Program-made: the position numbers and the translations under genes | Notes under the pieces: generated by a model | Told to the model about the DNA's origin: nothing | Seen by the model: the letters and a program-made list of their open reading frames with translations, nothing else | Databases searched by the model: none | Part shown: positions 11,391 to 54,182 of the stretch, piece after piece | Position numbering within the stretch: position 1 is the stretch's first letter | Layout of the letters: each line of letters begins with the position of its first letter | NCBI GenBank assembly: GCA_964304625.1 | Contig: OZ199840.1 | Span: 8,705,487-8,769,486, forward strand | Reading direction: 5' to 3' | Source of the DNA: Kudoa neothunni | Taxonomy: Eukaryota; Animalia; Cnidaria | Length of the DNA: 64,000 nt

Positions 11391-11402
11391 AATAATGTGT
11401 AT

Positions 11403-14267: not shown

Positions 14268-17198
14268 CTAGTCATTTTTCTTTTTTCCGATGAAAAATGC
14301 GATTCCCCCCTATCAAAAGTACCACTCCTGCAACAGCTGATACGATTATTCTATCTATAAATTAAACAACTCAAATAACAAAAATTAATACATCATTTTC
14401 ATGTTTGACCTAAAATTAAAATTTCGTTATATTGTTATATACAATAATATAGTAGTAAAATCACTTTGCACTACTTTTTTCACCTAAAGAGAATAACAAT
14501 AAAAAAATAATTTTTAATTTATTTAATACCTTGATTTATTGCAGCGGTTCCGTAATATGTCGGATCAGACTCCAAGTATACGATTAAATGATAATTGTTT
14601 GATTCTGGCAAGTTATCAATGGTGAAACTTGCACATTTTGGAAACTTGGTGCATTTAGAATTCCGCACCATACATGATCTCACAATTAATTGTGATTTTG
14701 CACTTGTATTTTTCAATTCCCATTTACATTTTGACTTTTCGTTCACTTTTGTCGAATGATGAGTTTCCACTGTGAATGTAGTTCCATCTCGTGTTATTGA
14801 AACGTCTAATACTTTATTGGTGTCTGTTGGATTTTCTTTAGGTTTATCTAATCGTTGATTAATATGGATAAATTTGAAATTAAAATTTTTACTTGAAGGG
14901 ATATCAATTGTTTGTTGTGTAGATTTTCCTCTAGCAGTCACCAAAACTCTGTATTCATGGTTTGGATCGTAGTCGGTGTTGAATACAATAGATTTGCATG
15001 ATGGCATATTTTGACATGTCTTTGAAGTGATATCATTAGTTTGAGCAGTATTTGCTGTTGCTGTGCCACCTGCTCTAGCTATACTTACTATCTCTGATTT
15101 TGGTGTAATTTCAGAACTTTGAGAAGGTTGTGAAGTCTGTGAGGATGGATCGGGAAATGTAAGAGTAGGTGGATTAGTTGAGGCAGGGGCAGGGCACACA
15201 AATATCGATTCATAATCATTACCCTTTTTAATTTTTACATCGTATTCACACAGGGCTGGAGTTTTTGTCGACAATCGTGCATTCAATTCGAATCCTTCCA
15301 TATTAAATCTATGAGTAATTGATAGTGTATCCAACTCTAATGAAATTTTATTTAATAAAAATGAAACAAAATTAACTTACGAGTTTCAACTCCACTATAA
15401 ATATGTTCCGCATAATCTTTATGAGCAACTACTTTAATGTCATATTGAACACCAGGTTCTAGACCAATGATTTTTTTAGTATCCTTACAGAAGCCTCTAC
15501 ATGGAATGCTGTCTTCGCATGACGCAGGATAGAAATTATCTTTTCCTGTCAAACTTATATGATATTCACATGTCGGTTCTGTTTCTTTATCATCGCGTAC
15601 CGTACCATCTACAGCTTTAAGGGATGCATCAGATGCTGTTGTTGTTGGAGTTGTAGCTAAATAAGTCTTCCCACTGCCGTTTTCTTAATAAATATTAATA
15701 TTGTCTGAAACATTAAATATATTTACTCGTTCTGTAAAATATCTTTTCTTTAAAATTTGTAGGGTTGGTAATTCCGGTTGCAGTTACTTCAATAATATAT
15801 GCCCTACCAGCATTAAGACCTTTTACGACTAATTCTGAGCCATCTTGCTTGCAATCTCCGTCAGTGGAGGAGGGACTTGTACTACTACCAGAAACACAAG
15901 TAGTAGTAGTCGACGTAGTCGGTTTAATACTGTCAGCGGCATAGTGGGTGAGAGTAGGGGTTCCATTATTCTCTTTTAAAAGGTTTGAATTAAATGTAAC
16001 ACCAAAATTTGTATGAGATGACAATAATTCTTTGGTTTGCTCAGTAATGGCTGAAAAAATTAAAAAATGTTTAAACTTTTTCGTTAAACAATTACCGTAT
16101 TTATTTTGGATATAACCGTCATACGTTTTGTTAGAATGCATTGATAGCTTGTGATGCCTCGTTTGGATTATAACACTGTAAACCGATTTTGCTGCAGATA
16201 CTGTTAAAGTAACATTTTTACAGGGGGCATAGCATTCACCGTTGCTGTTACCACACTTTGATTCATATGCATCATTAACTGCAGTAGTCTCAGCATTTCT
16301 AACACGAAAGACACAAATTTCATGGGATGGGTTATTAGTAAATTTCAAAGTGATTTTTTTGTCATCTTCAGTATTTTTAGTAACATAAAATTGTGGCTTG
16401 TAAATTTCAATGTTGTCTCTCATGTACACATTAGGCAAGTTATAAAAAAAGCTTGGATAATTTTCACATCTCACTTCATAATGAGGAATTAGGAGATCGA
16501 AATCAACCGTATTTGCTTCGTTTTCAGTGATACAATTAGTGTTGGCCGTTCCTTCATTGTATTTCGTATCCTTATAGTGGATTGGACAGGCCACTGGTGT
16601 GTATGTTTTTGCACACAATTTGAGCTTTTTTGAATTGTCAGTGGAAATTAAAATTTGTGGATTTACAAGCAATGCTAAATTTAAATTAAATGTTAATAAA
16701 ATTTAATATCACAGTTACGTATTACTAAACCAAACACTTTGCCACCCTTAATTTGAGTTTGAGTATTAACAGCCCCTGCGTTAATTCCAGCAAAAATGTA
16801 AATGAATTGAGTTCTGGGAGAAAGTACGTTAAAACCTATCTTTATATCATCCCCAGCACACTTTCTAACACATTTATTTTTTGATGCTTCATCAGTATCG
16901 TTATTAGGACATCCATCTATTTCACCAAGCACAGCAGGAGGGGCCCCATTAGACTTCATGATACGGCAGGTTTTACCTTCTGTAGTATATGTACTTCCTT
17001 CTAAAATAAGTTGGACCTTGAATATATTTGCAGTAGTATCTTTCACAATTTGGTATTTCACAGTTTCGGCCAAAGAAGTTTGAACTGGGACTACTTTCTC
17101 ACAAAGTTTTTGTTTAATGAGAACTATAAATAATTTTTTAAATATGAGGAACCAAATAAATTACTTAATATGTAAAATACGTTTAGAACATTCATCAT
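14268..17198 (-). CDS. Family copy 2; intact except one extra base in the TM exon
   Basis: 34-nt exon 1 at 17165-17198 (MMNVLNVFYIL|ILIKQKLC), same 10-exon layout as copy 1. C6 at 14305-14310 versus C5 in the other four - copies shifts the end to IGGNRIFHRKKEK*. Confidence 0.8.
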
Positions 17199-19460: not shown

Positions 19461-19655
19461 AATTAAATTTATTTAATTAGTATTAACAACTTATGAATTA
19501 CTTTATTATTTGATTCATGTTTACTATTAAAAATAGCCAAAATGTTATATATTTTCTGTAATTTTAATACAAAAACCAAATATAACTATTATTAATCTAT
19601 TATTTTAAATCTTAAAGTTTTTATTAATAAATATTTTGATTTAATCTACTATATA

Positions 19656-22009
19656 TGTTACAGGCATTGTATGAAATTCAAACAATATATAGAATGCCTA
19701 GGCAAAGTGTATAATATATGCGTTCTTACATACTCTATCTAGGCATTCTATACAATGACTAGTTCTACTTCATGCAATTTATAAAAAATTAATTCCCACC
19801 AAAAAGATGTTCGATTCGTCGTTTTCACGTGATAATAGTCCTTGGGTTTAGACGACGCAACGTAAGTTTGTGCTCATTGCTGTGTGTTTGTAAACATGAA
19901 CGGAAAAAATTCAAATGTAGCATTTGAAAAAAAATCCCGTTTGATTGAAATGAGAGAACTTTTCCTTACAGAGCTATCAAAAATGCGAACCACTGGTGCT
20001 AAAAATTGTGTTTTCCTTACCGACGCTAGTTATGAACGACTAGTGAATGATGTGATAAGAGCAAAGCTAACAACAAAGAAAGGATCACGGGATTATTGGC
20101 TTCTGAAACGCTACGATGTGATGACGATAGAGGAAAAAAGAAAGTTGCTCTATCCTGTCAAAGAAAGGGTCCGTTCTATTCAGTTTTACGTCAGTGATTC
20201 TGAATTATTTGATGTTATTCATGACGCTCATGTAGACATTGGACATGGAGGACGAGACAGAATGTTAAAGGAGCTTCGACCAAAATTTAAAAACATTACC
20301 AGTCGTGATATTGAATTGTACATTCAACTTTGCCAGGCATGCCAGAAGAAACAAAAAGGCATGAAGAAAGGCATTGTAGTGAAACCGATGGTATTTTCAG
20401 ATTTTGATTCCCGCTGTCAGGTGGATCTAATTGATTACCGACCCCATCCTGATAAAGAATACAAATTTATAATGGTATATCAAGATCACCTTACTAAGTT
20501 TGTTGTTTTACGGGCTATTAAATCAAAAACAGCTGAAGAAATGGCGTTTAATTTAATAGACATATTCACATTACTGGGAGCTCCACCGATATTGCAGTCA
20601 GATAACGGTCGAGAATTTTCCAATAAGGTGATCACAAACCTGAAGAAATACTGGCCGACATTAAAGATTGTTCATGGAAAGCCGCGACATTCTCAAAGTC
20701 AGGGTAGTGTTGAGCGAGCTAACCAAGATATCGAAAACATGTTGTCTACTTGGATGCAAGACGAAAAAGCCAACAAATGGAGTGAAGGAATACTTTTCGT
20801 CCAACTTATGAAAAATAGAGCCTTCCATTCTGGGATTCAAAGAACACCTTACGAAGCTCTCTTTGGCTGCAAAGTTAAAGTTGGTCTCACTACGTCTTCC
20901 ATATCTCAAGATGTCTTAGTCGGTATACACACTGAAGAAGAATTAGAAATAATAATTGAAAATATGCACACAATAGAGTTAGATGTGAACCATGTGACCG
21001 AAGAAATGAGCATTATTCCACAGAACCCTGTTGAGATTTCTGAATACGAAATGGAAAAACAATGCTACAATGAAGAGATGTGTACTCAAGAATCTGAAAA
21101 TTCCTCCGTGTGTTGTGTATGCTTAAAAGCAAGTACTGGTGCACATACTTGCATTAAGTGTGGCCGAAGCGTCCATATAATCTGTGGGGAAAGTCTAAAA
21201 GACTACAATGGTGAAACAATTGAAGGTTATGGTATTGATATCTGCTGCATTATTTAACATTGAAAATGTGGAAAAACATAAGAAGCTGTCTATGTTGAGC
21301 CTAGAGATTTAAGCAAAAAGAATGAAAATGGCTTCGGAAAAAAATTTTTCTCCCGCAACTTTGGGCGATACCGTGCGCATTCCTATTCCTGATGTGGACA
21401 AGGGACGTGGTGACCCGCGAAATGTGTTAGCGGTGGTAATGTACCTTACGGGAGATGGTTTTTACCGACTTGGAACTAATCAAGAAAGGTTAAAGCAGCT
21501 ATACGCAAGATCACAATTTAGCATTTGCCAAAAGCGATTTATAAAAATTGTTGATGTCAATGACCACGAAATACCTCTACGCTCTGCTGCTACTTCTCAA
21601 TCAACAGGAAGTGGTCAAGGATTTTTAAGGTGTATGTGTAAAACTAAGTGCCAAAATAACAAATGCCTTTGCCTCAAGAAGAATTTACAATGCAATTCAA
21701 AATGCCATTCTAGTCTTCCTTGTTGTAATAAATAATAAGTTATTGTTGTGCTTCGTTTGTGATTTTTCTGAAGGCTAATTTCGACTTCTTCTTGCGCTTC
21801 ATTTTTGATTATTAACCATTTTTTGACGAATATCTTTTTAAATTTGCATATTTGCACATTGCCTGAAGTAGAACTAGTCATTGTATAGAATGCCTAGGTA
21901 GAGTATGTAAGAATGCATGTATTATACACTCTGCCTAAGAATGCTAGGCATTATACACATTAAATAGGCATTCTATATACATCCTGAATTTCATACATTG
22001 CAGGTAACA
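19656..22009 (+). mobile_element. Ginger-like DNA transposon with KRBA2/SCAND3-type rve integrase
   Basis: Termini TGTTAC...GTAACA with ~120-150 bp imperfect TIRs (19726-19777 mirrors 21858-21912). Flanks TATA/TAAA (possible 4-bp TSD with one mismatch). No LTR, gag or RT. Confidence 0.85.
19884..21735 (+). pseudogene. Integrase-type DDE transposase (HHCC zinc finger, rve core, Cys-rich C-terminus), disrupted near 21257-21322
   Basis: HDAHVDIGHGGRDRM..CQAC; QVDLID; ILQSDNGREF; SQGSVERANQ; C-terminal CMCKTKC..CLC...CNSKCH. Confidence 0.85.
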
Positions 22010-23640: not shown

Positions 23641-26600
23641 GGCAGTGTCTATTTTTCCAGACGCGCTTTTTCTCTTAAAATAATAATTCATTCGCTACAA
23701 TTTTTTCCTAAAAATATCTTTTATGAATGCAGAATATAAATTTAGTTTCATTTATCTTTTAATTAATAATTAGGTATCAAAATACATCGAGGATATTTTA
23801 AACTCATTCATAAGTATTATTATAAATGACATTAAATTTTTATAAATCTGTATTATTTATATAATTAATCTAATTTTATGTGTTATAACAGCATAAACGA
23901 GTAAAATACCCTCTAGCGTGCGGTTGTAACTTTGATAGTCGCGAGTAGAATCACTATGGAAGGAGAGTCTGATCAAACACTACTAATTCAGGATATTACA
24001 TCTGAACCTATGGTCGAAAATGCATTTACAAACTTTGAAAAGGCTAAAGAATTCATGGATGAGTACTCAAAGCGGAACAACTTTTGTTACTGGATCCGAG
24101 ACTCTAGAAAAATCTCAACTGCCCTAAAAAAATTTGATAGAGACATGAACTCTGATCTTGTTTATTATGAAGCCACTTTTTGTTGTGTTCATGGTGGTAA
24201 AAATGTAATCATCTATATAAACATTGATGTAATTAATTTGAATTCAGATACAATCTAAAAGTGCTGGGAAGAGAAAAATTAACAGCCATAAACGTGGTTG
24301 CAATTTCTTCATTACACTGCGAGTTCCTAAAAACATGAACATGTTAGTTTTTAGAAAATTGGATCATACTCACAGCTGCAACAGAAATGAGCATTTTAGG
24401 GATTTTTTACCAATGAATAGAAAATTAGATGAAAAAAGCAAGAACCTTATAAAAAATGTTCATTTTTATGATGGAAATCTAAAAAAAATGTTTGTCTGAT
24501 ATTTCGGAGGTGTTTAATTCAATAAAAAATTCTCACCCAATTGCAACTATCGAAATATTGCACAATGATTCCAATGAAATGACTGGAATATTTTTCCAAG
24601 ACCTTTACATGAAAAACGCTATTATAAAATTTCCCGAACTAGTATTTATGAATTCCATATATATATATATATATATATATGTATTAATCAATAATCGAAT
24701 GTCATTGTATATGCGCCTGTTTATTTATTTGACTTTGGGCAAAGTTAAACAAGAGCTATTGCTCTTTTATTTGAGGAGCGTACCGTGACTGTTACCTGGT
24801 TATGTCAATCTCTACTTAAACATAATGAGGAAATGTCAACCAAAACAGTTTGTTTCATTACGGATAAAGACATGATTGAAAGAAACTCTATAAGATCTGT
24901 ATTTCCTAACGAAAGTACAAACTTATGCCTGTACCATGTCTTAAGAACATTTGGGAGAGAGATCTCTACATTAAGAATGGGAATAAACAAAGCTGAAGGA
25001 ATAACTGCCTTAGAGTTGATTCAAAAGCTTTATTATATCAATGATCCAAAAATTTATGAAAATTACCATGAATTGTTAAATAAGACATGTAACAAAAAAT
25101 CATTAGTTATTATAATAAATCTTGGGATCCAATCAAACATAAATGGTGCCCGGCATATATGAACCTAAAGGGTACTTTTTAAATAGAACAAATAATCGAT
25201 TAGAATGCATAAATTCCAAAATTAAACAAATCATAAAAAAATTCTCAACAATTGAAGTCTTTTTCAGCGATCTGCTTATTTATTTATCAAGTATGAGGAC
25301 TGAGCGTGAGAGTAAAGCAGTTAGAGAGTGGACAACCCAAACTGTTGAGAAATTAAATTCAGACATTAACGAACAATATAAAACATTGTTGACTTCATAT
25401 GCGTATAATATTATGCAGGATGAAATAAATAATCATATCGAATCCTATGCCAATCCTGATCCCAATAGTTGTACATGTTGTTTCTACGTAAGTATGGAGT
25501 TACCATGTAGGCATATTATTTACGCTAGAAAAATAATGACCAAAAATTTATATGAAGAGAAAATTTGTAATAAGAGATGGCACAAAGAATAATACCTGTC
25601 ATTTATTCAAATGACCAAAAATTTAGATCTTTAAAATCCTTCGTGTTGTGTGCAACCAAGTATTACAGAAATTTCGAGTCAGTGCCCTGTTCCGAATTCT
25701 GCTTTAAAGCGATACAGGGAGCTAGAAATTCGTTGTAAGAAAATAGCTTGGCTAGGGTCTGAAAAAACAGGGAGTCAATATAATTCATTAAAAAAGATTT
25801 TAGGTGAATTAATCTCTCTTATTTCCAATGGGGATTCTCTGGATAAGGTGACTATTTTTTCCACTATTCATATATCAACTTAATTTAGTTCAAGTTGACG
25901 TCTGAATCTGTCAACGAAAACAATCAAGAGATTTCAATCCCAACATGTAATTAGTGATATTGTCTTTAGTAGAATTTTTATTTCGTGTTTAGTTACTGAG
26001 GAATCACGATTAGAGAATGAGGATATACTAGAAGCAGTTAATGATAATGTTCCATCATCAATAATTGATATGGAGATCCCGAATATTGTAGATGATACCA
26101 CAACTAAAAATCCATCTTTGAAGGGTGTGTATCTTTTGTCCATTTTGCTAAATTCATAAAATTATAGGAATTAAGCTGCCAACAGTAGTGAAATTGAGAG
26201 GTAGACCAAAAGGTGTATTTCAAACAGTTATTGGTTTAAGAAAAAAAAGAAAATTATGATTATGGTAATGATGATAGTAGTAATAATAACAACACCAATA
26301 TCGATATATCATATTCAAATATAATTTTATGTGGAAGTTAAACAGTCCCAATTATTTGGCGTTGCAATACAAGATAATTTCAAACATTTATTATTTAAAG
26401 TAGAATACTCAACATTTTATTAAATTTTAGTGGTGTATCAATCAGCTGATAAAAACATTTACCTAATTATAAAAGTTTTAAATACGAATTGGCCAAATAG
26501 TTTTACTTTACTGTATTTTCATTTGGATATTATGGATACAAATTAGTTATGTTAAAATTCGTCACTGAATTAATGAAACTAAATTTATATTCTGCATTTA

Positions 26601-39786: not shown

Positions 39787-42705
39787 CTAGTCATTTTTCT
39801 TTTTTCCGATGAAGAATGCGATTCCCCCTATCAAAAGTACCACTCCTGCAACAGCTGATACGATTATTCTATCTATAAATTAAACAACTCAAATAACAAA
39901 AATTAATACATCATTTTCATGTTTGACCTAAAATCAAAATTTCGTTATATTGTTATATACAATAATTTGGTAGTAAAATTACTTTGCACTACTTTTTTCA
40001 CCTAAAGAAAATAATACAAAAATAATTTTTAATTTATTTAATACCTTGATTTATTGCAGCAGTTCCGTAATATGTCGGATCAGACTCCAAGTATACGATT
40101 AAATGATAATTGTTTGATTCTGGCAAGTTATCAATGGTGAAACTTGCACATTTTGGAAACTTGGTGCATTTAGAATTCCGCGCCATGCATGATCTCACAA
40201 TTAATTGTGATTTTGCACTTGTATTTTTTAGTTCCCATTTACATTTTGACTGTTCGTTCACTTTTGTCGAATGGTGAGTTTCCACTGTGAATGTAGTTCC
40301 ATCTCGTGTTATTGAAACGTCTAATACTTTATTAGTGTCTGTTGGATTTTCTTTAGGTTTATCTAATCGTTGATTAATACAGATAAATTTGAAACTAAAA
40401 TTTTTACTTGAAGGGATATCAATTGTTTGTTGTGTAGACTTTCCTGTGGCAGTCACCAAAACTCTGTATTCATAGTTTGGGTCGTAGTCGGTGTTGAATA
40501 TAATAGATTTGCATGATGGCATATTTTGACATATCTTTGAAGTGTTATCATTAGTTTGAGCAGTATTTTCTGTTGTTGTACCACCTGCTCTAGCTATACT
40601 TACTATCTCTGATTTTGATTTAATTGCAGAACTTTGAGAAGGTTGTGAAGTCTGTGAGGATGGATCGGGAAGTGTAAGAGTAGGTGGATTAGTTGAGACA
40701 GGGGCAGGGCACACAAATATCGATTCATAATCATTACCCTTTTTAATTTTTACATCGTATTCACACAGGGCTGGAGTTTTTGTCGATAATCGTGCATTCA
40801 ATTCGAATCCTTCCATATTAAATCTATGAGTAATTGATAGTGTAGCCAGTTCTAATAAAATTTAATGTAACAAAAATAAAACAAAATTAGTTTACTAGTT
40901 TCAACTGCCTTGTAAATGTGTTCTGCATAATCTTTATGAGCAACCACTTTGATGTCATATTGAACACCAGGTTCTAGACCAATGATCTTTTTAGTATCCT
41001 TACAAAAGCCCCTACATGGATTGCTGTCGTCGCATGAAGCAGGATAGAAATTATCTTTTCCTGTCAAACTTATATGATATTCACATGTTGGTTCTGTTGT
41101 TTTATCATTGGTTACCGTACCATCAACAGTTTTAAGGGAGGCATCGGATGCTGTTGTTGTTGGAGTTGTATCTAAATAAGTCTTCCCACTCTCGTTTTCT
41201 TAGTAGATATTAATATTGTCTGAAACATTAAATATATTTACTTGTTCTATAAAATATTTTTTCTTTAAAATTTGTAGGGTTGGTGATTCCTGTTGCAGTT
41301 ACTTCAATAATATATGCCCTACCAGCATTAAGACCTTTTACGACTAATTCTGAGCCATTTTTCTTGCAGTTTCCATCACTACCATCAGTTATACTACTAC
41401 TAGAAGCACAAGTAGTAGTAGTCGATGCAGTCGGTTTAATACTGTCAGCGGCATAATGAGTGAGAGTAGGGGTTCCGCTGCTCTCTTTTAAAAGTCCTGA
41501 GTTAAATGTAACACCAATAGCTGTGTAAGCTGATAATAGTCCTTCTGTTGGTTCAGTGATAGCTAAAAAAATTTAAAAATGTTTGTACTTCTTCGTTACA
41601 CAATTACCGTATTTATTTTGAATATAACCGTCATACGTTTTATTAGAATGCATTGCTAGCTTGTGATGCCTTGTTTGGATTATAACACTATAAACTGATT
41701 TTGGTGCAGACACCGTCAAAGTGACATTTTTACAGGGGGCATAGCATTCACCGTTGCTGTTACCACACTTTGATTCATATGCATCATTAACTGCAGTAGT
41801 CTCAGCATTTCTAAGACGAAACACACAGATCTCGTGAGATGGGTTGTTAGTAAATTTTAAAGTGATTTTGTTATCTTCAGTATTTTTAGAAACATAAAAT
41901 TGTGGCTTGTAAATTTCAATGCTGTTTTTCATGTATTCATTAGGCATGTTATAAAAAAAGCTTGGATAATTTTGGCATCTCACTTCGTAATGTGGAATTA
42001 GGAGATCGAAATCAACCGTATTAGCTTGGTTTTCATTGATGCAATCAGTGTTGGCCGTTCCTTCATTGTATTTCATATCTTTATAGTGGATTGGGCAGTT
42101 GACTGATGTACATGTTTTTGTGCTTAACTTTAATTTGTTTGAGGTACCCTCTGTTGAAATAGAAATTTGTGGATTTACAAGTAATGCTAAATAAAATATT
42201 TTTATTTAATCGAATTAACTATACAGTTACGTGCTACTAAACCAAATACTTTTCCACCATGTAATTGATTAGCTGTATTAACAGCCCCTGCGTTGTCTCC
42301 AGCAAAAATGTAAATGTAATGTGTTCTGGGAGAAAATAAATTAAAGTCTATTTTTATATTATCCCCAGCACAAACTCTAACACATTTATTGTTCGCGTCC
42401 CCTTCCGTTATGCCGCTCGGACAAGAGGTAATTTCGTCAAATGCAAGTGCATTATTGGCTACATTTGACTTCATGATGCGGCAGGTTTTACCTTCAGTAG
42501 TATATGTACTTCCAGTTAAAATTAGTTGAACTTTGGATTGATTTCCATCAGTGTCTTTCACGATCTGATATTTCACTCGTTCTGTTGGAGCAATGGGAAC
42601 GTTTCCGTCACAAAACGTTTGGTTAATAATAACTTAAAAAGTTTATCAGCGAATAAAAAATATTAAATTACTAAATATGGAAAAAATATTAATAATAAAC
42701 AACAT
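39787..42705 (-). CDS. Family copy 4; apparently fully intact
   Basis: Exon 1 at 42672-42705 (MLFIINIFSIF|IIINQTFC); no frameshift found. C-terminus QGEKSSAKSNMKMIIIVSAVAGVVLLIGGIAFFIGKKKND*. Confidence 0.85.
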
Positions 42706-43276
42706 TGTAGTCTTATTGTGGCGATAAGAATATAATCATTTCACAAATCGGTTGAATAGGGCGAATACGATTTGTGCTATTCAATGAATGTTTTTGAGGG
42801 TATTATTGAATTCATATTAATTATTTGTAGGTCAAAAAAACAAGTTATGATTAATCATGGAGGTTATGAAATTAATTATATATTTTTTTAAAATATAAAA
42901 TAATTATTCAATATTTTCAGTTTATTTCTTTTGGAAAAATTTATATAAATTCCATTAATTTGAAAGATGATGTATTATAAATGTCCTGAATACCTATTAT
43001 TCGAGGAATTAGTTAAACCTACATAGCACACAATGCAAAAAAATACTAAATTTTTAATTTGATAAATAATTATGTTTGATAATAGTAGAAAATATTCAAT
43101 ATTATGGAACTTGTTTAAGTCTGTTTCCCTACTAAATCATAATTAAGGTAATAACACAAAATGAAATTTTTGATTAATTCATTTTTTTAATATATATATA
43201 TATATATATGAAGTATTAATTAATATAGGAGGTTTTTTCCGTATAACCCCAGGTACTTTAAATAGTTACTGAAATT

Positions 43277-45416
43277 TCACCTCTGTTCCTCTTGCTTAGG
43301 AACTCTTGTGCAATGGCTTAACTCTGAAAGGAACTATGAGGAAAAACAAAAGAAAAATTTCGGATAATTTTCTCAAGTCATGGAAACGTGATGTTTTTTC
43401 ATCCATTTTTGATTTCAGTGGGGATTTTATATTAGGCTCGTGCGTTTCAAAAAAATACTACGCTGTAAACCTCTTGTCTAGTCAACACCATGATAACTCA
43501 ATCCATGACGTAGACTGAAAGACACCCAACATCACTATGCACCACAAAAAAACAAATGATGGTGTTGATATGGCTGACAAATTGACCGCCCAATATTCCT
43601 ACAGCAAACCTACGAGAAGATGGCCATTTAAAATTATTTATGGACATGCTCGGTATAGCTTGCTCAAGTACCTATATTTTGTGGATAAAAAACATCCTGA
43701 GTGTCAAAAAAGTAAGTAGAAATAGGATACAATGTTTTATACGGCAGTTATCCATTGAATTAGCACGAGAACATGAATCATGGCGCCATAATAACCAAGA
43801 AAGATTGCCAATCAACATTAAGCATGGATTTCGTCTATTTTATGGAAGTATCAACAATGATTCCTCGTCCCTCATATCGAGTTCTTCGCATGCATTAAGT
43901 AGGAAACGATGTTTTTTTTGTCCAATAAACCAAGACAAAAAATCACAGATATTGCGTTTCAATTGTCAAAGATTTGTTTGCGCCAAACAAATTTTAAACA
44001 TAAGAACATTATTTATTGTATGGACTGCGACAAAAAATTCCTATATAATTGAAAAAGGTATGTGTCTGTTTTTTTATATTCTCAACCTTGTGTGAATATA
44101 ATGGCGTCGTCAATATATCCAGTAAAACATTGAAGCTAATTTTTTTAAATATAAGACACAATTAATCTTTACGTCACATAATTTTTTTTATTTTTTTATT
44201 ATAGATATTGCATTTTGATTCAACCTATGCTTAATTCGCTGATTAAATCCAAAATAAACCTTAAACATCTGAATCGATAATTGGAATAGTTTAAAATGTT
44301 TTAAAACTATATGATTTTGATTCATACAATGATTTCACAAAATACGTGAATAACTGAAAAAAAGAAGTAACGTTTTATTCTCTAACCGTAAACTATATGG
44401 GATTTTAAATAATTTTTTTAACTATACACGGAAATAAATCTTTCAACATTTTTATATACATATTTAAACCTCTCGTTTAAAAAGTTTGAGCGTTTAAATT
44501 TTTTAAAACTTAAGATCACACGCAGAAGAAATTTTGTTAGGAAAATATTAATTATAATGAACAATTAACTGCCTGTAATGTTTATTGTACTTGAAATAAT
44601 AAGATATTTTTCCCTCGTATGTTCGTTTGAATGATTCATTAATAAATGGATATATAAACGTTTAAAAAATTTGAATCACTCTCAAAAAAGGTTGTTAAAG
44701 AACATAACTATTGATATACAAAATTTTATGATATTACACTTAATCAAACTAATTTTTTCATTTGTAAAATTGTTGAAGTTTCATCCGCAAAACCAAAAAT
44801 TAATTTGATACATTTCGTTTTTCAAATAAATATAAGGATCGAAGTTTAAAAAAGTGGAAATAAACTCGACTGAAAAATGGAAGCTTAGAACTAAAATAAA
44901 TTGAATTATAATGTCAGTAAATAATAATGAAGCGTGTAAATTTTAAAACGCAACAGACTATGACTGAAGAATTCAGCAAACAGCAAAAATTGCAAAATCC
45001 TGCGTCATTTGAGATCGAAAATCTGTTTATATTAACCACGATCGAGTGTTCCGTTTTGATGCGTGGCTTTTTCCTGATAGCGTATATCACGCTAATCTTT
45101 TGTTTTTTTAAGTTTTCTGATTCGAGAATAAATTATATCTACAAAGCAATCTCCACTGTTGAAATATTACCGATTCAAACACATGCATTTCATCTTGTGT
45201 AAATAATGTTGCAGCTAACAAACAACGCCATTTTTTGTAATGAAGGAAATAAAAATTCAGTTAGATTTTGGTTTTAATTAGCTTAAAATTGTATAATAAA
45301 TTAATTGATAATAATTCAATCGCAGTAAAACTTAGTTATCATTGATTGCTTCTGGGGTCACTGAGTGCCCACCACCACGCCAGGGGGTAATTTTTTGACA
45401 CTCAGTACTAGGAAGG
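43277..45416 (+). mobile_element. 5'-truncated piggyBac-like remnant (duplicate of 11770-13815)
   Basis: Same motifs (ORFs 43306, 43537, 43640 with RKRCFFCP..C..FVC). Right end AGGAAGG|TTAA at 45416. Confidence 0.8.
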
Positions 45417-45853
45417 TTAAATAACATCGTTTGTATAAATATCACGCTCCCCAAGAAATAAGCTCAAAAACAAAGAGACAATTAAGAAGTACACGTATTC
45501 TTAAAAACCATCCAATGAAATCAATAATCATTAATGAATATAATTATTTTTAAATTATACGGTCAAATTTAATAATAATAACCACTAAAAATATGTTATT
45601 TCATATTGAGTTATTCAGTAGTGCATCTCTACCCTGAATACTTTTAGACATTTTTTTCACTTTAATACAGTAAATATATTGAATATTAAGTTGATTTTAT
45701 ATAGACTTAAAACTTATATGATTTCATTAGAAAGCAAGAATCAAATAAAGTTAACAAAACTAGTGCTATTTTAAAAATTTGATTATGAATAAATTATTGT
45801 AAGAAAATATAAATAATAATTAATTAATATAATAAATAAAAAGAATGTTGGGG

Positions 45854-48780
45854 CTAGTCATTTTTCTTTTTTCCGATGAAGAATGCGATTCCCCCTATCA
45901 AAAGTACCACTCCTGCAACAGCTGATACGATTATTCTATCTATAAATTAAACAACTCAAATAACAAAAATTAATACATCATTTTCATGTTTGACCTAAAA
46001 TCAAAATTTCGTTATATTGTTATATACAATAATTTGGTAGTAAAATTACTTTGCACTACTTTTTTCACCTAAAGAAAATAATACAAAAATAATTTTTTAA
46101 TTTATTTAATACCTTGATTTATTGCAGCAGTTCCGTAATATGTCGGATCAGACTCCAAGTATACGATTAAGTGATAATTGTTTGATTCTGGCAAATTATC
46201 AATGGTGAATCTTGCACATTTTGGAAACTTGGTGCATTTAGAATTCCGCGCCATGCATGATCTCACAATTAATTGTGATTTTGCACTTGTATTTTTTAGT
46301 TCCCATTTACATTTTGACTGTTCGTTCACTTTTGTCGAATGATGAGTTTCCACTGTGAATGTAGTTCCATCTCGTGTTATTGAAACGTCTAATACTTTAT
46401 TGGTGTCTGTTGGATTTTCTTTAGGTTTATCTAATCATTGATTAATACAGATAAATTTGAAACTAAAATTTTTACTTGAAGGGATATCAATTGTTTGTTG
46501 TGTAGATTTTCCTGTGGCAGTCACCAAAACTCTGTATTCATGGTTTGGATCGTAGTCGGTGTTGAATACAATAGATTTGCATGATGGCATATTTTGGCAT
46601 GTCTTTGAAGTGATATCATTAGTTTGAGCAGTATTTTCTGTTGTTGTACCACCTGCTCTAGCTATTTTTAGTGCGTCAAATCTTGACTTAATTAGAGAAT
46701 TTTGAGAAGGTTGTGAAGTCTGTGAGGATGGATCGGGAAGTGTAAGAGTAGGTGGATTAGTTGAGGCAGGGGCAGGACACATGAATATCGACTCATAATC
46801 ATTACCCTTTTTAATTCTTACATCGTACTCACACACAGCTGGTGTGTTTGTCGATAATCGTGCATTCAATTCGAATCCTTCCATATTAAATCTATGAGTA
46901 ATTGATAGTGTATCCAATTCTAACGAAATTTAGTATTAACAAGATAAAATAATATTGATTTACTAGTTTCAACTGCCTTATAAATATGATCCGCATAATC
47001 TTTATGAGCAACTACTTTAATGTCATATTGAACACCAGGTTCTAGACCAACGATTTTTTTAGTATCCTTACAAAAGCCTCTACATGGAATGCTGTCTTCG
47101 CATGACGCAGGATAGAAATTATCTTTTCCTGTCAAACTTATATGATATTCACATGTTGGTTCTGTTGTTTTATCATCGCGTACCGTACCATCTACAGCTT
47201 TAAGGGATGCATCAGATGCTGTTGTTGTTGGATCTGTATCTAAATAAGTCTTTTGAGCGCCACTTTCTTAATAAATATTAATGATTTTAATATTATTTTG
47301 TATATTCACTCGTTCTGTAAAATATTTTTTCTTTAAAGTTCTGTGGATCAGTAACTGTTGACATTGCAACTTCAAACATGTAAGCCCTTCCACTATCAAG
47401 ACCGGTTACCACTAATTTAATACCTTCTGTTTTGCAAGTGCTTCCATTTCCAGACGTTGTGCCACTACCAGCAGCACAGTTAGTAGTACTTGGTGCGTCT
47501 GGCGTAAAAGTGTCGGCAGGATAATGAGTGAGAGTAGTGGTTCCGGCAGTAACTTTAAAGGGCGAAGAATCAAACTTGACACCTACATTAGTAAACTCTG
47601 ATAATAATCCCTCGGTTGGTTCAGTAATTGCTAAAAGAATTGATCATATTTATGTAAGTGATTTCATTCGTTATTACCGTATTTATTTTGAGTATACCCC
47701 TCATAATTTTTATCAGATTTTATCGTTAAATCGTGATGTCTTGTTTGGATTACGACACTGTAAACCGATTTTTCTGCTTTGACAGTTAATGTAACATTTG
47801 CGCAAGGGGCGTAGCAATCACCATTTTGGTTACCACAATTTGACTCATATGCGTCACTTGAACCAGTTTGTGTAGCATCTTTAATACGAAACACACAGAT
47901 TTCGTGAGATGGATTATTAGTAAATTTTAAAGTAACTTTTTTAGTATCTGCAGAGTTTTTCGTGATTATAAAATTGTGGTTTGTAAATTTCAATTCCGCT
48001 TTTCATGTATTCATTGGGCATGTTATAAAAAAAGCTTGGATAATTTTGACATTTCATTTCATAATGAGGAATAAGAAGATCGAAATCGAGGATATTCGCT
48101 TGACCGTCAGTGTTACAACTATCAGCATTTGTACCTGCTGCGTACTGCATGGCTTTGTAGTGAATGGGACAGTCTACAGGAGTGAATGTTTTGACACATA
48201 ATTTAAGTTTTTTTTGAGGTGTCAAAGGAAACAGCAAATTTCGGATTAACAAGCAATGCTAAAGTTAATGTAATTATTTATTTCATTAATAATAAGTTAC
48301 GTGTTGAAAAACCAAACATTTTTCCTCCTGTTAATTCGTTCGCATCTTTTTCGGCTCCGTCCTTGGTCCCAGAAAATATGTAAACGTACGAAGTTCTGGG
48401 AGAAAGAGCATTAAAATCCAACTTTAAATCGTTTCCAGCACAAACTCTAACACATTTATCGCCGGAACGGGCAGGTTCTCTTCCGGTAGGGCAATTACTA
48501 ATTTCATTTAAAGTAAGTGCATCGCCCGCTTTATCAGATTTCCTGATGCGACACATCTTATTGGCGGTAGTATAAATACTCCCACTTAAAACAAGTTGGA
48601 GTTTGAATGGATTATCACCCGTATCTTTCACAATCTGATAATTCACTATTTCCGTTGGAATGGTAGGAACATTTTCATTGGAGAAGGTTTGGTCGATGAA
48701 AACTATAAAAAAACAATATGGAAAACATAAAAAAATCTAAAATTACTTAACGTGGAAATAATATGAAAAACAAGCGACAT
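45854..48780 (-). CDS. Family copy 5; two apparent +1 frameshifts; most diverged N-terminal half among the - copies
   Basis: Exon 1 at 48747-48780 (MSLVFHIISTL|IFIDQTFS). Extra bases at 48208-48215 (T8) and ~47966. TM/tail as in copy 4. Confidence 0.75.
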
Positions 48781-51266
48781 TAATGATGTTTAATGCAGCT
48801 GATGGTATTATTTAATATTAAAATAATTGCATGAATGGACGAATATGTTATATTGCTTACCAATGAATGCCTACCGAAGAATTATTAAATTCTTCATTAT
48901 CAGTTGACTTCATCAAATGAATAAACTCTATTACATAGTATGCATCTAATTTAATTTTCATTGGTCCATATTAAAATAAAAACCAAAATTGACCAATAAT
49001 ATTTATATATGAAGTAATTTAGCCGAGAACAGGCTTTTGAAACACAATAAGTTGCAAAATTATATTGTAGAAATTTTATGGAACTTAACAATATCTAGAA
49101 CTGCCTGATCATATAAAACATTATGGATTAAAAATTAAATGAATACTTTAGTGGATACATTGGTTAATATAACTGTTTAATCGGGTCTAATTGAGTTTGA
49201 TTTATGTAAAAAATTGTTTGATTCCGAACACTAATCCTATTGATAAAAGCTTTCTTAAACTGCAAAACAAATTGTATATTTTTTACAATTAAAAAAATTC
49301 CGTTTGTGTTATAAAATCAAAAAAGTATACATAAACATTCTAAAAGTATTTTACACACCCCTTGTCCTATTATTTACATCAATACTGAGATTCCCAATAT
49401 GAAACATTAATTATGCGTCATGATATAAGTACATGTTAATCAAGCTTAACTAAGTTCAACTTTATATTTAAAACTGAAAATAATTACAATACTGAAAAAT
49501 AAACAATACAAATAAGTTGATTTGGGAAAAAATGAATACTTACATATCTCGAATTTTTACAAATTATTCCATTTTAGGAAACCAAAAAATATAAATTAGA
49601 GTAATTAAGAATAGTCACAAGTAATGAAATATTAGCTAATAGAATAATAAACTAAAAAAATCAATCTGAATAATAATAGCAAAATTATTTAATTTTATAG
49701 TTTATTATTTGTAAATTGGTAAAGTTTCAATATCGATATTCTTGTTTAAGAGTAGTTAATAATCAATTAATTAAACAAACCTCAGTATTTAAATATTCCG
49801 ATGTGCATGTTTTAAACATCACGAATAATTTTTTAACCTGATATCACATATCCATTGATTTATTTAATTATTTTAAAATTAATTTTGGTATAATCTTTAT
49901 ATGAAAATATTTTTTGTACGAATTAGAAGCATCTCGTGTGGTTTTAGCTCGAACGTGAGATTGATAACAAGAATTATTTTAAATTTTTATATTATTTATA
50001 CAAATAAAAACCTTATTTAAATATAAATACATATATATTAAATTAGTTAAGGTAAGAATTAAACAGAAAAATAAATATCGCGATATTGACCATCAAAGAT
50101 TTCGAACGCAAATATTCGATGGTATATGGATGGTGACAATTATTATTTACCATATAATATACATATAAATATAATATCAACTTACACTCTTCTAATAAAT
50201 TATATTCAAGAACTAATTCATCAATTAAAAATATCACGTAATCTTTGGTGTATTGCAAACGAGACGGATAATTCAAACGGGATAATCGCTAGCCGCTTAT
50301 AAAATGTAACTAGGACAATCAAAATGTAAAAATAATTGATAATTCAATTATTTTAAAGTCATATTTAGGTGCTATGTTACTAATGTTATAAAGTTTATAA
50401 AGTACGAATTAAACTTTCTACATATTGATTAATTTAATTTTCGTCGCGATATTACGTACTACCCTTAAGTTAGTTTACATAAATTTATAATTTATAAACA
50501 AATATAAACGAACAATTTTGTTATTATAAATTCCTGAGCTTAGGTAAATAGTTCAAATTATGTTTTACACAATTATACTTATTATTATATTGTTTTAAAG
50601 GAAGGACTCTATATCACGGTAACTTATAGGGATCGGGGACATGTTGCGCAACATCGAGATCTTATTGTGATTTCTAGAAATGACCATCGCCAGTCTGGAA
50701 AATATGACATGGTTTTATTTATTCTGCTTCTATTATGTCGATTAATAATGAAATTTGATATAGACTAAACGCGTGTAACGTAGTTTTTATATTATTTAAT
50801 ATTATCTTATTTACCTAGGTATGAGTAATGTGAGTTCAACACACAATAAAGTTCTATGAATATTCTAAAATTTTCTGGTTAAATTTTTGTAAAATGTATA
50901 ATATTAATATTAAATAACTACGATATATATTGATTTAAATGCAATTTAGATTACTTTAATAATATTTTTTGTGAATTATAAAAACTAATTTTATCACGGA
51001 TGGATGACACTTGAAATGTCACTAGGAGTATTTATCATTGTGTCTTATAAATGTTTGTATTTAAAAGGAACCATAAATCATTAGCTATATTCAATCCAAA
51101 GATAATTAGGTTATCTTCATGAGGAGAGAGTTTTCCAAAAAAAAATGCTTGTGTTTAAAAAGAGAGTAATTTAAGTAGTAAGTTATATAAGTGAAAATAT
51201 TGTTCTTTGGGGTAAAATTATAAAATTAATAAGCTAAGATATAAATAAATAGAGATGATATGTGGG

Positions 51267-54182
51267 TTAGTCATTTTTCTTTTTTCCGATGAAGAATGCG
51301 ATTCCCCCTATCAAAAGTACCACTCCTGCAACAGCTGATACGATTATTCTATCTATAAATTAAACAACTCAAATAACAAAAATTAATACATCATTTTCAT
51401 GTTTGACCTAAAATCAAAATTTCGTTATATTGTTTATATACAATAATTTAGTAGTAAAATTACTTTGCACTACTTTTTTCACCTAAAGAAAATAATACAA
51501 AAATAATTTTTAATTTATTTAATACCTTGATTTATTGCAGCAGTTCCGTAATATGTCGGATCAGACTCCAAGTATACGATTAAGTGATAATTGTTTGATT
51601 CTGGCAAATTATCAATGGTGAATCTTGCACATTTGGAAACTTGGTGCATTTAGAATTCCGCGCCATGCATGATCTCACAATTAATTGTGATTTTGCACTT
51701 GTATTTTTTAGTTCCCATTTACATTTTGACTGTTCGTTCACTTTTGTCGAATGATGAGTTTCCACTGTGAATGTAGTTCCATCTCGTGTTATTGAAACGT
51801 CTAATACTTTATTAGTGTCTGTTGGATTTTCTTTAGGCTTATCTAATCGTTGATTAATACAGATAAATTTGAAATTAAAATTTTTACTTGAAGGGATATC
51901 AATTGTTTGTTGTGTAGATTTTCCTGTGGCAGTCACCAAAACTCTGTATTCATGGTTTGGGTCGTAGTCGGTGTTGAATACAATAGATTTGCATGATGGC
52001 ATATTTTGACATGTCTTTGAAGTGTTATCATTAGTTTGAGCAGTATTTGCTGTTGTTGTGTCTCCTGCTCTAGCTATACTTACTACCTCTGATTTTGATC
52101 TAATTGCAGCATTTTGAGGAATTTGAGGAGAATTTTGAGAAGACTCGGGAGGACGTAGGAGTAGGTGGATTAGTTGAGACAGGGGCAGGGCACACAAATA
52201 TCGATTCATAATCATTACCCTTTTTAATTTTTACATCGTATTCACACAGGGCTGGAGTTTTTTGTTGCATTCAATTCGAATCCTTCCATATTAAATCTAT
52301 GAGTAATTGATAGTGTATCCAACTCTAATGAAATTTGATCTAATAAAAATAAAACAAAATTAACTTACGAGTTTCAACTCCATTATAAATATGTTCCGCA
52401 TAATCTTTATGAGCAACTACTTTAATGTCATATTGAACACTAGGTTCTAGACCAATGATTTTTTTTAGTATCCTTACAAAAGCCCCTACATGGATTGCTG
52501 TCTTCGCATGACGCAGGATAAAAACTGTCTTTTCCAGACAAACTTATATGATATTCACATGTTGGTTCCGTTGCTTTAACATTGCTTACCGCACCATCAA
52601 CAGCTTTAAGGGATGCATCAGATGCTGTTGTTGTTGGAGTTGTAGCCAAGTAAGTGTTTTGAGCGCCATTTCTTAATAAATATTAATATTGTCTGAAACA
52701 TTAAATATATTTACTTGTTCTATAGAATATTTTTTCTTTAAAATCTGCTGGGTTTGTGATTCCGATTTCAGCCACTTCAATAATATATGCCCTTCCAGCA
52801 TCAAGACCTTTTACGACTAACTTTGAGCCGTCTTTTTTGCAATTTCCACTACTACCAGTTATCGTACTACCGTCAGCACAAGTAGTAGTTGTTGCAGTTG
52901 GTTCAATACTGTCAGCAACGTAATGAGTGAGAGTAGGGGTTCCACTGTTCTCTTTTAAAAGTCCTGAGTTAAATGTAACACCAATAGCTGTGTAAGCTGA
53001 TAATAGTCCTTCTGTTGGTTCAGTAATCGCTAAATAAATTCATTATGTTTATACTTTTTATTTCGCTTTTTATTACAATATTTATTTTGGATATAGCCGT
53101 CATAGGTTTTACCAGTTTGTTCTGTTAAGATATGATGCCTTGTTTGGATTACAACGCTGTAGACCAATTTTGCTGCAGATACAGTCAAAGTAACATTTTT
53201 ACAGGGGGCATAGCAGTTCACCGTCACTATTACCACACTTCGATTCGTATGCATCATTAGCTGCGGTGGTCGCAGCATCTTTAACTCGAAAGACACAAAT
53301 TTCATGGGATGGGTTATTAGTAAATTTTAAAGTGATTTTGTTATCTCCAGTATTTTTAGAAACATAAAATTGTGGCTTGTAAATTTCAATGGTGCTTTTC
53401 ATGTATTCATTAGGCATGTTATAAAAAAAGCTTGGATAATTTTGACACCTCATTTCATAATGTGGAATTAAGAGATCAAAATCAACTGTATTAGCTTGGT
53501 TTTCAGTGTCACAGTTACCAACTTGTGTTCCATCGTTATATTTCATATCTTTATAGTGGATTGGACAGACCACTGGTGTGCATGTTTTTGCACCCAATTT
53601 GAGCTTTTTTTGAATTGTCAGTAGAAATAGAAATTTGTGGGTCAATAATTAATGCTAAATTTAAATTGATTATTAATAAAATTTAAAATCAAAGTTACGT
53701 ATTGCTAAACCAAACACCTTGCCACCCTTCGTTTGAGATTGTGTATTAACGGCCTCTGCGTTAGCTCCAGCAAAAATGTAAATATATTGGGTTCTGGGAG
53801 ACAACGTATCAAAAGCTATTTTTATATCGTCCCCAGCACATGTTCTAACACATTTGTTGCTGGATTCCCCTCCAGTGTTTCCCTCCGGACATGCGTTGAT
53901 TTCGGCAAATGCAATAGCTTCGTTATTTATATTAGATTTCCTGATGCGGACACGTCTTGCCTTTTGCTGTATAAGTACTTCCACCTAAGACGAGTTGAAC
54001 CTTTAATGGATCTGCAGCAGTATCTTTCACAATTTGATATTTCACAGTCTCAGTTGGGGCAGCAGGAACTGGGGATACTTCCTCACAAAGTTTTTCTTTA
54101 ATAAGAACTATAATAAATTTTATAAGTATGAAGAACCAAATAAATTACTCAATATGTAAAATACGTTTAGAACTATCATCAT
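51267..54182 (-). CDS. Family copy 6; multiple apparent frameshifts (pseudogene or consensus errors)
   Basis: Exon 1 at 54149-54182 (MMIVLNVFYIL). Indels near 53948, 53605-53611, 53216, 52459-52466, 52258-52266, ~52150 and 51632. TM/tail intact. Confidence 0.7.

Follow-up and report, generated by a model that had tools for sequence, protein, structure and literature searches.

In a tandem gene array of Kudoa neothunni, a myxozoan parasite found in tuna muscle, the 3′ half of the genes has most probably been overwritten by ectopic gene conversion, with old sequence types kept in the 5′ half. A probability of about 85% is assigned to this explanation taken as a whole. The analysed stretch of 64,000 nucleotides, referred to here as the window, contains five minus-strand paralogues (c1 to c5), each with 10 exons and about 830 codons. 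Two further array copies lie directly upstream of the window, so that the array comprises seven copies, all on the minus strand, within about 65 kb; two dispersed copies, d1 and d2, are located on the same chromosome. The region under study runs from the stop-codon end of c1 (14268) to the start codon of c5 (54182). The genes considered in the window, with the material on which each is based, are the following:

14268–17198, minus strand: c1, given from its start codon to its stop codon, with 10 exons (alignment, exon coordinates, indel list); its sole frame break, an additional G in a G-run of the transmembrane (TM) exon near 14310, puts other residues in place of the last part of the TM segment and the tail KKKND
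27163–30098, minus strand: c2 (alignment, exon coordinates, indel list); frame breaks in exon 3 (+2 nt, near 29236) and exon 6 (+1 nt, near 27939)
39787–42705, minus strand: c3, 830 codons, the only unbroken copy in the window (alignment, exon coordinates, structure models); signal peptide, about seven predicted beta-sandwich domains, two microexons, TM segment and KKKND tail, in this order
45854–48780, minus strand: c4, a chimera (per-exon dS, trees and AU tests, indels); two frame breaks, both in exon 3 (near 48215 and 47967)
51267–54182, minus strand: c5, seemingly a pseudogene (alignment, exon coordinates, indel list); seven frame-breaking indels spread over exons 2, 3, 5, 6 and 7; the acceptor of intron 4 reads GG instead of AG
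5582–8446, plus strand: a divergent paralogue with the exon order of the array (tblastn per exon)

Polarised divergence among the copies, as proposed in the initial annotation, is real and far beyond chance, and it is confirmed by both nucleotide identity and dS. Among the five window copies, mean pairwise identity is 0.68, 0.70, 0.82 and 0.77 in exons 1 to 4, and rises to 0.93 in exons 5 and 6 and 0.98 in exon 7. The exon 2 loop peptides cited as differing among the copies were all found on the minus strand (five of five). The 3′ segments described as almost base-identical indeed have mean identities of 0.96–1.00: besides exon 7, this applies to microexons 8 and 9 (1.00), the TM exon (0.98) and introns 7, 8 and 9 (0.98, 0.96 and 1.00). 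The 3′ introns are thus better kept than the distal coding exons, as claimed, with 0.96–1.00 in introns 7–9 versus 0.70 in exon 2. Introns 6–9 are 95–100% identical, compared to 62–73% for introns 1–3 and the sequence flanking the gene on either side; identity is 0.62 in the 200 nt upstream of the gene and 0.70 in the first 100 nt past the stop codon. The same contrast is visible at synonymous sites. The dS of exons 2, 3 and 4 is 0.94, 0.75 and 0.65, and that of exons 5, 6, 7 and 10 is 0.15, 0.10, 0.08 and 0.07, which is 6- to 13-fold lower in the 3′ half. When all seven array copies are compared, pS is 0.29–0.61 in exons 2–4 versus 0.07–0.19 in exons 5–10 in each of the 21 pairs (Fisher p 1e-10 to 1e-37), and introns 1–3 are less alike than introns 6–9 in 21 of 21 pairs. 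The segments defined by this contrast are all on the minus strand:

39787–41171 in c3: homogenised block, exon 5 to the stop codon including introns (identity 0.93–1.00, dS 0.07–0.15); equivalents 14268–15656 (c1), 27163–28548 (c2), 45854–47239 (c4) and 51267–52645 (c5)
41172–41241 in c3: intron 4, 70 nt, the zone of the dS step (sliding dS and identity, c4 chimera junction); equivalents 15657–15726 (c1) and 47240–47309 (c4)
41242–42705 in c3: unhomogenised block, exons 1–4 (identity 0.68–0.82, dS 0.65–0.94); equivalents 15727–17198 (c1), 28619–30098 (c2), 47310–48780 (c4) and 52715–54182 (c5)
39910–40001 in c3: two microexons, of 19 nt (39983–40001) and 18 nt (39910–39927), with intron 8 between them
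39787–39868 in c3: TM exon, about 22 hydrophobic residues followed by the KKKND tail and stop
42382–42426 in c3: Cys-closed loop of the N-terminal domain in exon 2; equivalents 16870–16914 (c1), 29770–29811 (c2), 48452–48496 (c4) and 53850–53894 (c5)

The idea of a gradient along the gene holds insofar as identity is higher toward the 3′ end, but the change is not smooth: sliding dS steps down at intron 4 and declines only slightly thereafter. The polarity is present in all array pairs, but it is reversed in some others, and c4 is closer to the dispersed copy d2 in its 5′ half.

Strong support for gene conversion at the 3′ end comes from the drop in dS, the homogenised introns together with a broken copy, the conflict between trees and the long identical tracts. 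In trees, the 3′ half clusters by genomic location and the 5′ half by lineage. The 5′-half tree places c4 and d2 as sisters (support 100/99) and rejects monophyly of the array (p-AU 0.003), whereas the 3′-half tree separates d1 and d2 from the array (support 99/99) and rejects the grouping of c4 with d2 (p-AU 4.5e-6). The copy c4 is a clear chimera, with exons 1–4 from the d2 lineage and exons 5–10 from the array lineage. Its dS to d2 is 0.11, 0.18 and 0.33 in exons 2–4 and 0.75, 0.43 and 0.26 in exons 5–7, whereas its dS to c1, c3 and c5 is about 1.0–1.4 in exons 2–4 and then 0.03–0.21 in exons 5–7. Identical tracts of 66–444 bp are globally significant in 13 copy pairs (GENECONV-like permutation, global p below 0.02), the PHI test gives p 0.0005, and both the tract partners and the nearest neighbour switch along the gene, with patches of 100% identity. 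Between the end of exon 7 and the stop codon, c3 and c4 do not differ at all, but the sequence downstream of the stop places them in different flank groups; the exchanges must therefore have been internal patches rather than single crossovers. The 3′ half of c5 retains 97–100% identity to the other copies despite the seven frameshifts of this gene. A rise in GC3, which is a frequent but not universal sign of GC-biased conversion, is not seen in the converted half (0.23–0.27 in exons 5–7 versus 0.24–0.29 in exons 2–4); nor is there a rise in intron GC, introns 7–9 being the most AT-rich.

Low divergence of the 3′ end could also arise from direct constraint on its nucleotides without any exchange, imposed by microexon splicing signals, RNA structure or a regulatory element. 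The microexons are invariant even in dispersed copies whose flanking introns vary, and a sister subfamily of dispersed copies displays a mild rise of identity from 0.75 to 0.90 in the 5′-to-3′ direction, so intrinsic constraint may explain part of the polarity. As a full account, constraint is very improbable. The low dS extends over about 1.3 kb of coding sequence and includes exon 6, whose conservation across the family is the lowest of all exons (38–43% amino-acid identity), and neither the switching neighbours with their fully identical patches nor the grouping by location in trees fits it. The plus-strand neighbour gene, which served as an internal control and has the same architecture, is fully diverged at its 3′ end: in exons 2–7 it shares 37, 56, 43, 47, 34 and 51% of amino acids with c3 (tblastn), with no rise toward the 3′ end, and this paralogue is therefore free of 3′ homogenisation. 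Out-paralogues compared to c3 share 46–58% identity in exon 2, 62–65% in exon 3, 38–43% in exon 6 and 62–65% in exon 7. More distant paralogues thus lack the polarity, and intrinsic constraint is no stronger at the 3′ end than elsewhere. It is just as hard to credit that the alike 3′ halves, the mosaics and the frameshifts are products of the assembly, caused by low-coverage read correction or mis-joins. The genome matches an assembly made from about 7x HiFi reads of an infected fish by hifiasm-meta, at a k-mer coverage of about 7 (PMC12239612), and about half of the frameshifts fall in homopolymer runs, so that some of them could be consensus errors. Against an artefact, the identity is graded rather than perfect (0.93 in exons 5–6, 0.98 in exon 7), and d1 and d2 follow a like tendency, in weaker form. 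Moreover, the HiFi reads exceed the whole gene with its unique flanks, making false overlaps between copies unlikely, and at the reported QV of 48.5 far less than one error is expected in the 15 kb concerned.

The other half of the pattern raises the question of selection. It is improbable, if slightly less so than the two preceding explanations, that the polarity stems mainly from host-driven diversifying selection acting on the N-terminal domains, with a fast-evolving 5′ half and a 3′ half that is not homogenised. The term "hypervariable" for these domains proved misleading, since omega over exons 2–4 is 0.17–0.41 and dS is as high as the non-coding flanks suggest. Exons 2–4 are old, unhomogenised lineages under purifying selection, not fast-evolving ones. 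Uniform dS together with dN/dS well below 1, the combination named in the initial annotation as refuting its reading, does not occur, since dS is non-uniform along the gene; that reading is not refuted and is supported in part. As the main cause, diversifying selection is largely refuted by this non-uniformity: synonymous divergence of the 5′ half is itself 6–13 times higher. Introns 1–3 and both flanks match exons 2–4 in their divergence, and several of the compared copies are frameshifted. Selection of this kind keeps moderate support at about six codons in or beside the Cys loop of exon 2, but not elsewhere, as the likelihood-ratio statistic (LRT) is 0 for exon 3 and not significant for exon 4. 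Site models place about 5–13% of exon 2 codons, grouped in the loop, in a class with omega 4–7. The M1a/M2a LRT is 17–21 with a parametric-bootstrap p of about 0.02 (observed value exceeded in 1 of 83 null simulations), as obtained by in-house maximum-likelihood code on nine recombining, near-saturated sequences; by data set, it is 20.8 for exon 2, 18.7 for the central segment, 12.3 for the five open copies and 17.4 after realignment. Most candidate codons, 81 and 86–89 in the numbering of the c3 CDS, lie in the loop. In the closest pair, c4 and d2, codons 60–100 contain 20 non-synonymous versus 2 synonymous differences (omega 3.3, p 0.07). The structure model presents this region as a low-confidence loop between strands, which would be part of the membrane-distal domain according to the predicted topology of the protein.

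The translated exons contain an N-terminal hydrophobic signal, a single C-terminal TM segment and a short basic tail, which corresponds to a type I single-pass layout; both microexons are required for the reading frame to enter the TM exon. The array genes would accordingly encode type I membrane proteins of a large lineage-restricted family, and the exon 2 domain has matches at at least 150 loci genome-wide. Each protein is predicted to consist of about seven Cys-containing beta-sandwich domains resembling fibronectin type III (FN3). Fold models reach pLDDT 75 and 82.5, and their best structural matches, with Z 5–7.2, are cytokine-receptor and fibronectin FN3 domains; values below 8 in VIA-align may mean no more than a common arrangement. 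For exon 2, the top matches are cytokine-receptor FN3 domains (Z 5–6.7, rmsd about 3 Å over 75–87 residues), and residues 94–192 of exon 3 match the FN3 domains of gp130, LEP-R, integrin beta4 and tenascin (Z 6.5–7.2). A Foldseek search gave no match at E 0.001 or better. No exon exceeds the gathering score of PF00041 (fibronectin type III), the best being exon 5 (E 0.07, 13.8 bits versus a cut-off of 25), and exons 2–4 do not match this profile at all. The five-residue tail KKKND fits a KKXX ER-retrieval motif; if this motif works, the protein would be off the cell surface. The published Kudoa annotation, with 5,316 proteins from protein hints, leaves the array family unmentioned, and the paper on the matching assembly reports almost no parasite RNA reads (PMC12239612). 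In the literature searched, no link between Kudoa and FN3-type proteins was found.

The step in identity and dS, the mosaicism, the tree conflict, the tracts, the c4 chimera and the frameshifts are observed, and ectopic conversion would be the mechanism at work in the array. In this process, the 3′ 1.4 kb, from exon 5 to the stop codon with its introns, would be rewritten repeatedly by short-tract conversion, in which broken copies take part as well. As a consequence of conversion between copies, the 3′ half evolves in concert and clusters by location. On one side the tracts halt at the stop codon, since the 3′ UTRs are of two types that cannot be aligned; on the other side they mostly end near intron 4. 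Exons 1–4, which encode the signal peptide and the first four domains, are largely spared from homogenisation, as is the promoter, and survive as at least three old sequence types, now and then swapped as blocks. This sparing may result from selection for diversity or, alternatively, from too little homology for recombination. A further, rather doubtful proposal is that the constant 3′ half acts as the homology anchor of a cassette system for new combinations of distal domains, likened to the VSG, vlsE and pilin systems. Broken and intact array members would then form a donor archive, with conversion or crossover anchored in the common 3′ block and the common 5′ types, c4 being one example. 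If true, this would represent recombinational antigenic or ligand variation in a parasite that is a cnidarian animal.

A half-conserved, half-divergent pattern is already known from other surface-receptor gene clusters. Noonan et al. reportedly described regional gene conversion in teleost protocadherin clusters in 2004. Regional gene conversion is documented in the clustered protocadherins of fugu (PMC1852091), which share several features with the Kudoa array. Both comprise tandem single-pass adhesion-type receptor genes, in which the 3′ part, with membrane-proximal ectodomains and TM segment, is more than 95–99% identical at synonymous sites among neighbours, and the divergent 5′ part with distal domains is the sole carrier of phylogenetic signal. 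In both, repeated lineage-specific gene conversion is the explanation. Unlike the fugu genes, the Kudoa array has no GC3 rise with conversion (PMC1852091). The Kudoa unit is also a 10-exon gene with homogenised introns instead of one large variable exon, broken copies participate, and the domains are FN3-like rather than cadherin, in a parasitic cnidarian rather than a vertebrate.

The second group of comparable systems consists of variant surface families with a constant C-terminal region, such as Giardia VSP, trypanosome VSG, and Plasmodium var and rif. As in these antigenic-variation systems, the Kudoa family combines a variable part, predicted to be exposed, with a constant anchor part. 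Common traits are a large family (at least 150 loci in Kudoa), a Cys-containing variable ectodomain, one TM segment, a very short conserved tail, arrays, pseudogene members and mosaic recombination; the VSP traits follow the summary in bioRxiv 10.64898/2026.02.11.705288. Neither sequence nor motifs relate the Kudoa family to these proteins: the translated Kudoa exons contain neither the CXXC repeats nor the CRGKA-type tail of VSP, but isolated loop-closing Cys pairs and KKKND. Further differences are that omega stays under 1 across most of the variable part and that the KKXX-like tail would even argue for ER retention. In MHC class I and other immune receptors, 3′ exons evolve in concert and old lineages persist in the ligand-binding exons. 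MHC class I and the Kudoa array thus both have membrane-proximal, TM and cytoplasmic exons homogenised with their introns within a genome, and old diversity kept in distal exons; the folds are unrelated.

As parasites of fish, myxozoans are of economic importance, and hardly anything is known of the molecules that they present to their hosts. The array offers a clean, well-controlled case of concerted evolution confined to one half of a gene, in an animal that is early-branching and highly reduced, and it shows ectopic conversion to be active in the Kudoa genome. Trees of the family must use the 5′ half only. The array also separates the part of the protein that is kept uniform, namely the stalk, TM segment and tail, from the part that is allowed or selected to differ, namely the distal domains and chiefly one Cys-closed loop, and this division provides candidates for diagnostics and host-interaction tests.

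The sequence of Kudoa neothunni under study totals 40.26 Mb in four contigs, and the window lies at C3:8705487-8769486; the published description gives 40.2 Mb with an N50 of 12.0 Mb, made up of three chromosome scaffolds and a mitochondrion of 18,219 bp (PMC12239612). Comparison of the window with itself shows a 3.2 kb unit present as five minus-strand copies:

14268-17198, minus strand: copy c1
27163-30098, minus strand: copy c2
39787-42705, minus strand: copy c3
45854-48780, minus strand: copy c4
51267-54182, minus strand: copy c5

The genome search adds two further array copies, u1 and u2, just upstream of the window. Two dispersed copies lie farther away on this chromosome, d1 some 0.36 Mb upstream and d2 some 1.75 Mb downstream. 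The limits proposed in the initial annotation, 14268-54182, correspond exactly to the stop end of c1 and to the c5 start codon, and the loop peptides it quoted for the five copies were all recovered. From the alignment of the nine copies, a 10-exon model was derived with GT..AG introns of 39-70 nt, which are short and of the TTTAG type; the median intron of this genome is 49 bp, with a GC content of 36.8% in exons and 26% in introns (PMC12239612). An SL1 leader pattern was looked for and is absent. The parts of the gene are as follows:

Exon 1: encodes most of the signal peptide
Exons 2-7: all six in phase 1
Microexons 8 and 9: 19 nt and 18 nt, after exon 7
Last exon: encodes the transmembrane (TM) segment and the tail KKKND

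The divergence between the copies depends on the position along the gene. The mean identity of the five window copies is 0.68-0.82 in exons 1-4, 0.93 in exons 5 and 6, 0.98 in exon 7 and in the TM exon, 0.96-1.00 in introns 7-9 and 1.00 in both microexons, which bears out the earlier description of a nearly base-identical 3′ end, introns included. Outside the gene it drops to 0.62 on the upstream side and to 0.70 over the first 100 nt past the stop. The Nei-Gojobori dS is 0.94, 0.75 and 0.65 in exons 2-4 and 0.15, 0.10, 0.08 and 0.07 in exons 5, 6, 7 and 10. The sliding-window check places the step at intron 4, where dS in 30-codon windows falls from about 0.6 to 0.2, then slopes to about 0.05. 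The contrast between the 5′ half (exons 1-4) and the 3′ half (exon 5 to the stop codon) at synonymous sites and introns is found in all 21 pairs of the seven array copies. Introns 1-3 and the non-coding flanks are as divergent as the 5′ exons, and therefore the anomaly is the similarity of the 3′ half rather than the divergence of the 5′ half. The initial annotation had counted uniform dS together with dN/dS well below 1 in exons 2-4 against its own reading; dS is not uniform, but dN/dS in these exons is indeed low (0.31, 0.17 and 0.31 by Nei-Gojobori).

Such uniformity could reflect an intrinsic constraint on the 3′ half, and the wider family argues against this source. Distant paralogues (on contig C1 and at C3:0.62 Mb) are 46-58, 62-65, 49-60, 69-77, 38-43 and 62-65% identical to c3 in exons 2-7, and the plus-strand neighbour gene at 5582-8446 is 37, 56, 43, 47, 34 and 51% identical. 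Exon 6 has the lowest conservation family-wide, yet it is 93% identical within the array. In the dispersed sister subfamily, the rise in identity is only mild, from 0.75 to 0.90.

The 3′-end gene conversion proposed initially is strongly supported by the dS step, by the conflict between trees, by the PHI-type test (p 0.0005) and by significant identical tracts. The closest partner of each copy switches again and again from one end of the gene to the other, and patches of 100% identity link the shifting partners. In a GENECONV-like permutation, identical tracts of 66-444 bp reached global significance in 13 pairs; they are located in both halves. In the tree of the 5′-end segment, c4 and u1 join the dispersed d1 and d2 (support 100/100), whereas the 3′-half tree sets a tight group of all array copies against d1 and d2 (99/99), and the downstream flank yields a third grouping. 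The AU test rejects monophyly of the array for the 5′ half (p 0.003) and the pairing of c4 with d2 for the 3′ half (p 4.5e-6). The clearest case of exchange is c4, in which array-type sequence has replaced the 3′ half: its dS to d2 is 0.11, 0.18 and 0.33 in exons 2-4 and 0.75, 0.43 and 0.26 in exons 5-7, and its dS to c1, c3 and c5 is about 1.0-1.4 in exons 2-4, then 0.03-0.21. A single unequal crossover as the sole mechanism is rejected because the identical patches have boundaries at both ends and the flanking sequence does not go along with them; we infer from these patterns that the exchanges were gene conversion events. GC-biased conversion was looked for, and the converted half shows no rise in GC3. 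The tract ends coincide with the stop codon and the start of two unalignable 3′ UTR types. These types begin within a few bases of the stop (e.g., 14168-14267 and 51167-51266; first 40-100 nt) and divide the copies into c1, c2, c3, c4 and u1 versus c5, u2, d1 and d2, a grouping at odds with both coding halves.

Larger units are also shared within the array. Identity is 94% between the 2.9 kb stretches downstream of c1 and c4 (11390-14267 and 42898-45853) and 87-89% between those downstream of c2 and c3, which means that duplications of larger units built up the array before the gene-internal exchanges took place. Between c1 and c2 lies an open reading frame (19884-21735, plus strand) with Integrase_H2C2, rve and SCAND3-like zinc-finger domains, which mark a mobile element with an integrase and are not what characterizes a Helitron. 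Fragments of a MULE transposase and of a SWIM zinc finger are present at 24785-25592 (plus strand), also between c1 and c2; MULE expansion is reported to be common to myxozoan genomes (2026 preprint).

Five of the nine copies are damaged. The c5 copy carries seven frame-breaking indels and an altered intron 4 acceptor, c2 and c4 are each broken at two places and d2 at one, and the TM exon of c1 has gained one base (+1) in a run of G; the frames of c3, u1, u2 and d1 are open. Since about half of these 13 indels fall in homopolymer runs, some may be consensus errors; the assembly was made from HiFi reads at about 7x, and parasite RNA was almost absent (PMC12239612). The omega of c5 versus c2 is still 0.16-0.32, which leaves three readings of the breaks: they are recent, they are errors, or conversion from intact copies masks them.

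The family was characterized by sequence and fold searches exon by exon. The Pfam scan of all large exons gave no match above threshold. At least 150 loci of the genome carry the exon 2 domain, and HMMER against 1.84 billion representative proteins found 17 unnamed singleton fragments related to exon 3 in metagenome and Logan contigs, two of which offered no informative context. The exon profiles show weak mutual similarity in hhalign, the best being exon 6 with exon 7 (probability 43%, E 2.5e-4). AlphaFold predicts one beta-sandwich for exon 2 (pLDDT 75, pTM 0.70) and two for exon 3 (pLDDT 82.5). The best structural matches (Z 5-7.2) are FN3 domains of cytokine receptors, gp130, LEP-R, integrin beta4 and tenascin, a resemblance of the predicted models at the fold level only; a Foldseek search of the PDB with the exon 2 model returned nothing at E 0.001 or better, and the literature search found no link between Kudoa and FN3. 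The hypervariable loop sits between strands four and five of the exon 2 model, in its lowest-confidence part, and by analogy with FN3 topology it would lie at the membrane-distal pole.

Selection was evaluated on concatenated codons with our own codon maximum-likelihood program (models M0, M1a and M2a). Exon 2 gave an LRT of 20.8 with omega 7 for 5% of codons; the LRT is 3.1 for exon 4, which is not significant, and 0 for exon 3, where the site models detect no positive selection. The signal is located in codons 52-112 (LRT 18.7 with the segment's own tree), and the LRT is 12.3 on the five copies with open exon 2 and 17.4 after protein-level realignment. The candidate codons (71, 81, 86-89 and 110 in c3) lie mostly in or beside the loop between two invariant cysteines. 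With fixed branch lengths, the observed LRT of 15.5 was reached in 1 of 83 M1a simulations, which sets p at about 0.02 rather than the chi-square 1e-4. Diversifying selection on the exposed tip, as originally proposed, thus narrows to a few codons in or beside the loop, and with nine recombining sequences and near-saturated dS it is suggestive, not proven; positive selection across the whole of exons 2-4 is rejected (omega 0.17-0.41). Omega exceeds 1 (1.4-1.8) in one window only, the Pro/Ser/Thr/Gln-rich exon 6 linker (about 40510-40670; c3 codons 586-640), whose two sequence types are swapped among copies and which looks like a mucin-like spacer under relaxed constraint. Exon 4 encodes another Cys-closed loop of variable length, with a GGT codon run in c2 (28738-28803).

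Several features touch on the processing of the product. At the usual intron 4 acceptor, GG replaces AG in u1 (L001:2414-2483) and c5 (52646-52714). Only these two copies have, over the 27 nt that precede it, an in-frame stretch without a stop that follows another AG, the use of which would add nine codons; the equivalent stretch of c1 contains a stop. Intron 6 (14848-14892 in c1) is 45 nt long and in frame; it is stop-free in c1, and c2, c4, d1 and d2 have a TGA there. Skipping of microexon 8, alone or with 9, leads in all copies (39869-40044 in c3) to a stop 1-3 codons past exon 7, and alternative splicing could in this way yield either a membrane-bound or a secreted protein; microexon 9 (18 nt) is a cassette that keeps the frame. 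The cytoplasmic tail has only five residues (39787-39801 in c3; the same in the other copies), and its end fits KKXX, the classic signal by which type I membrane proteins are retrieved to the ER. If it works here, this signal would be at odds with a surface location.

Other variant-surface-like families have been reported in another myxozoan (2026 preprint). The closest known phenomenon is the regional gene conversion of teleost protocadherin clusters, in which neighbouring genes share the 3′ part of the variable exons at more than 99% identity and diverge in the 5′ part (PMC1852091), like the uniform 3′ and divergent 5′ halves seen here. The array is a new instance of this type of regional conversion, from a parasitic cnidarian and a gene family not described before.
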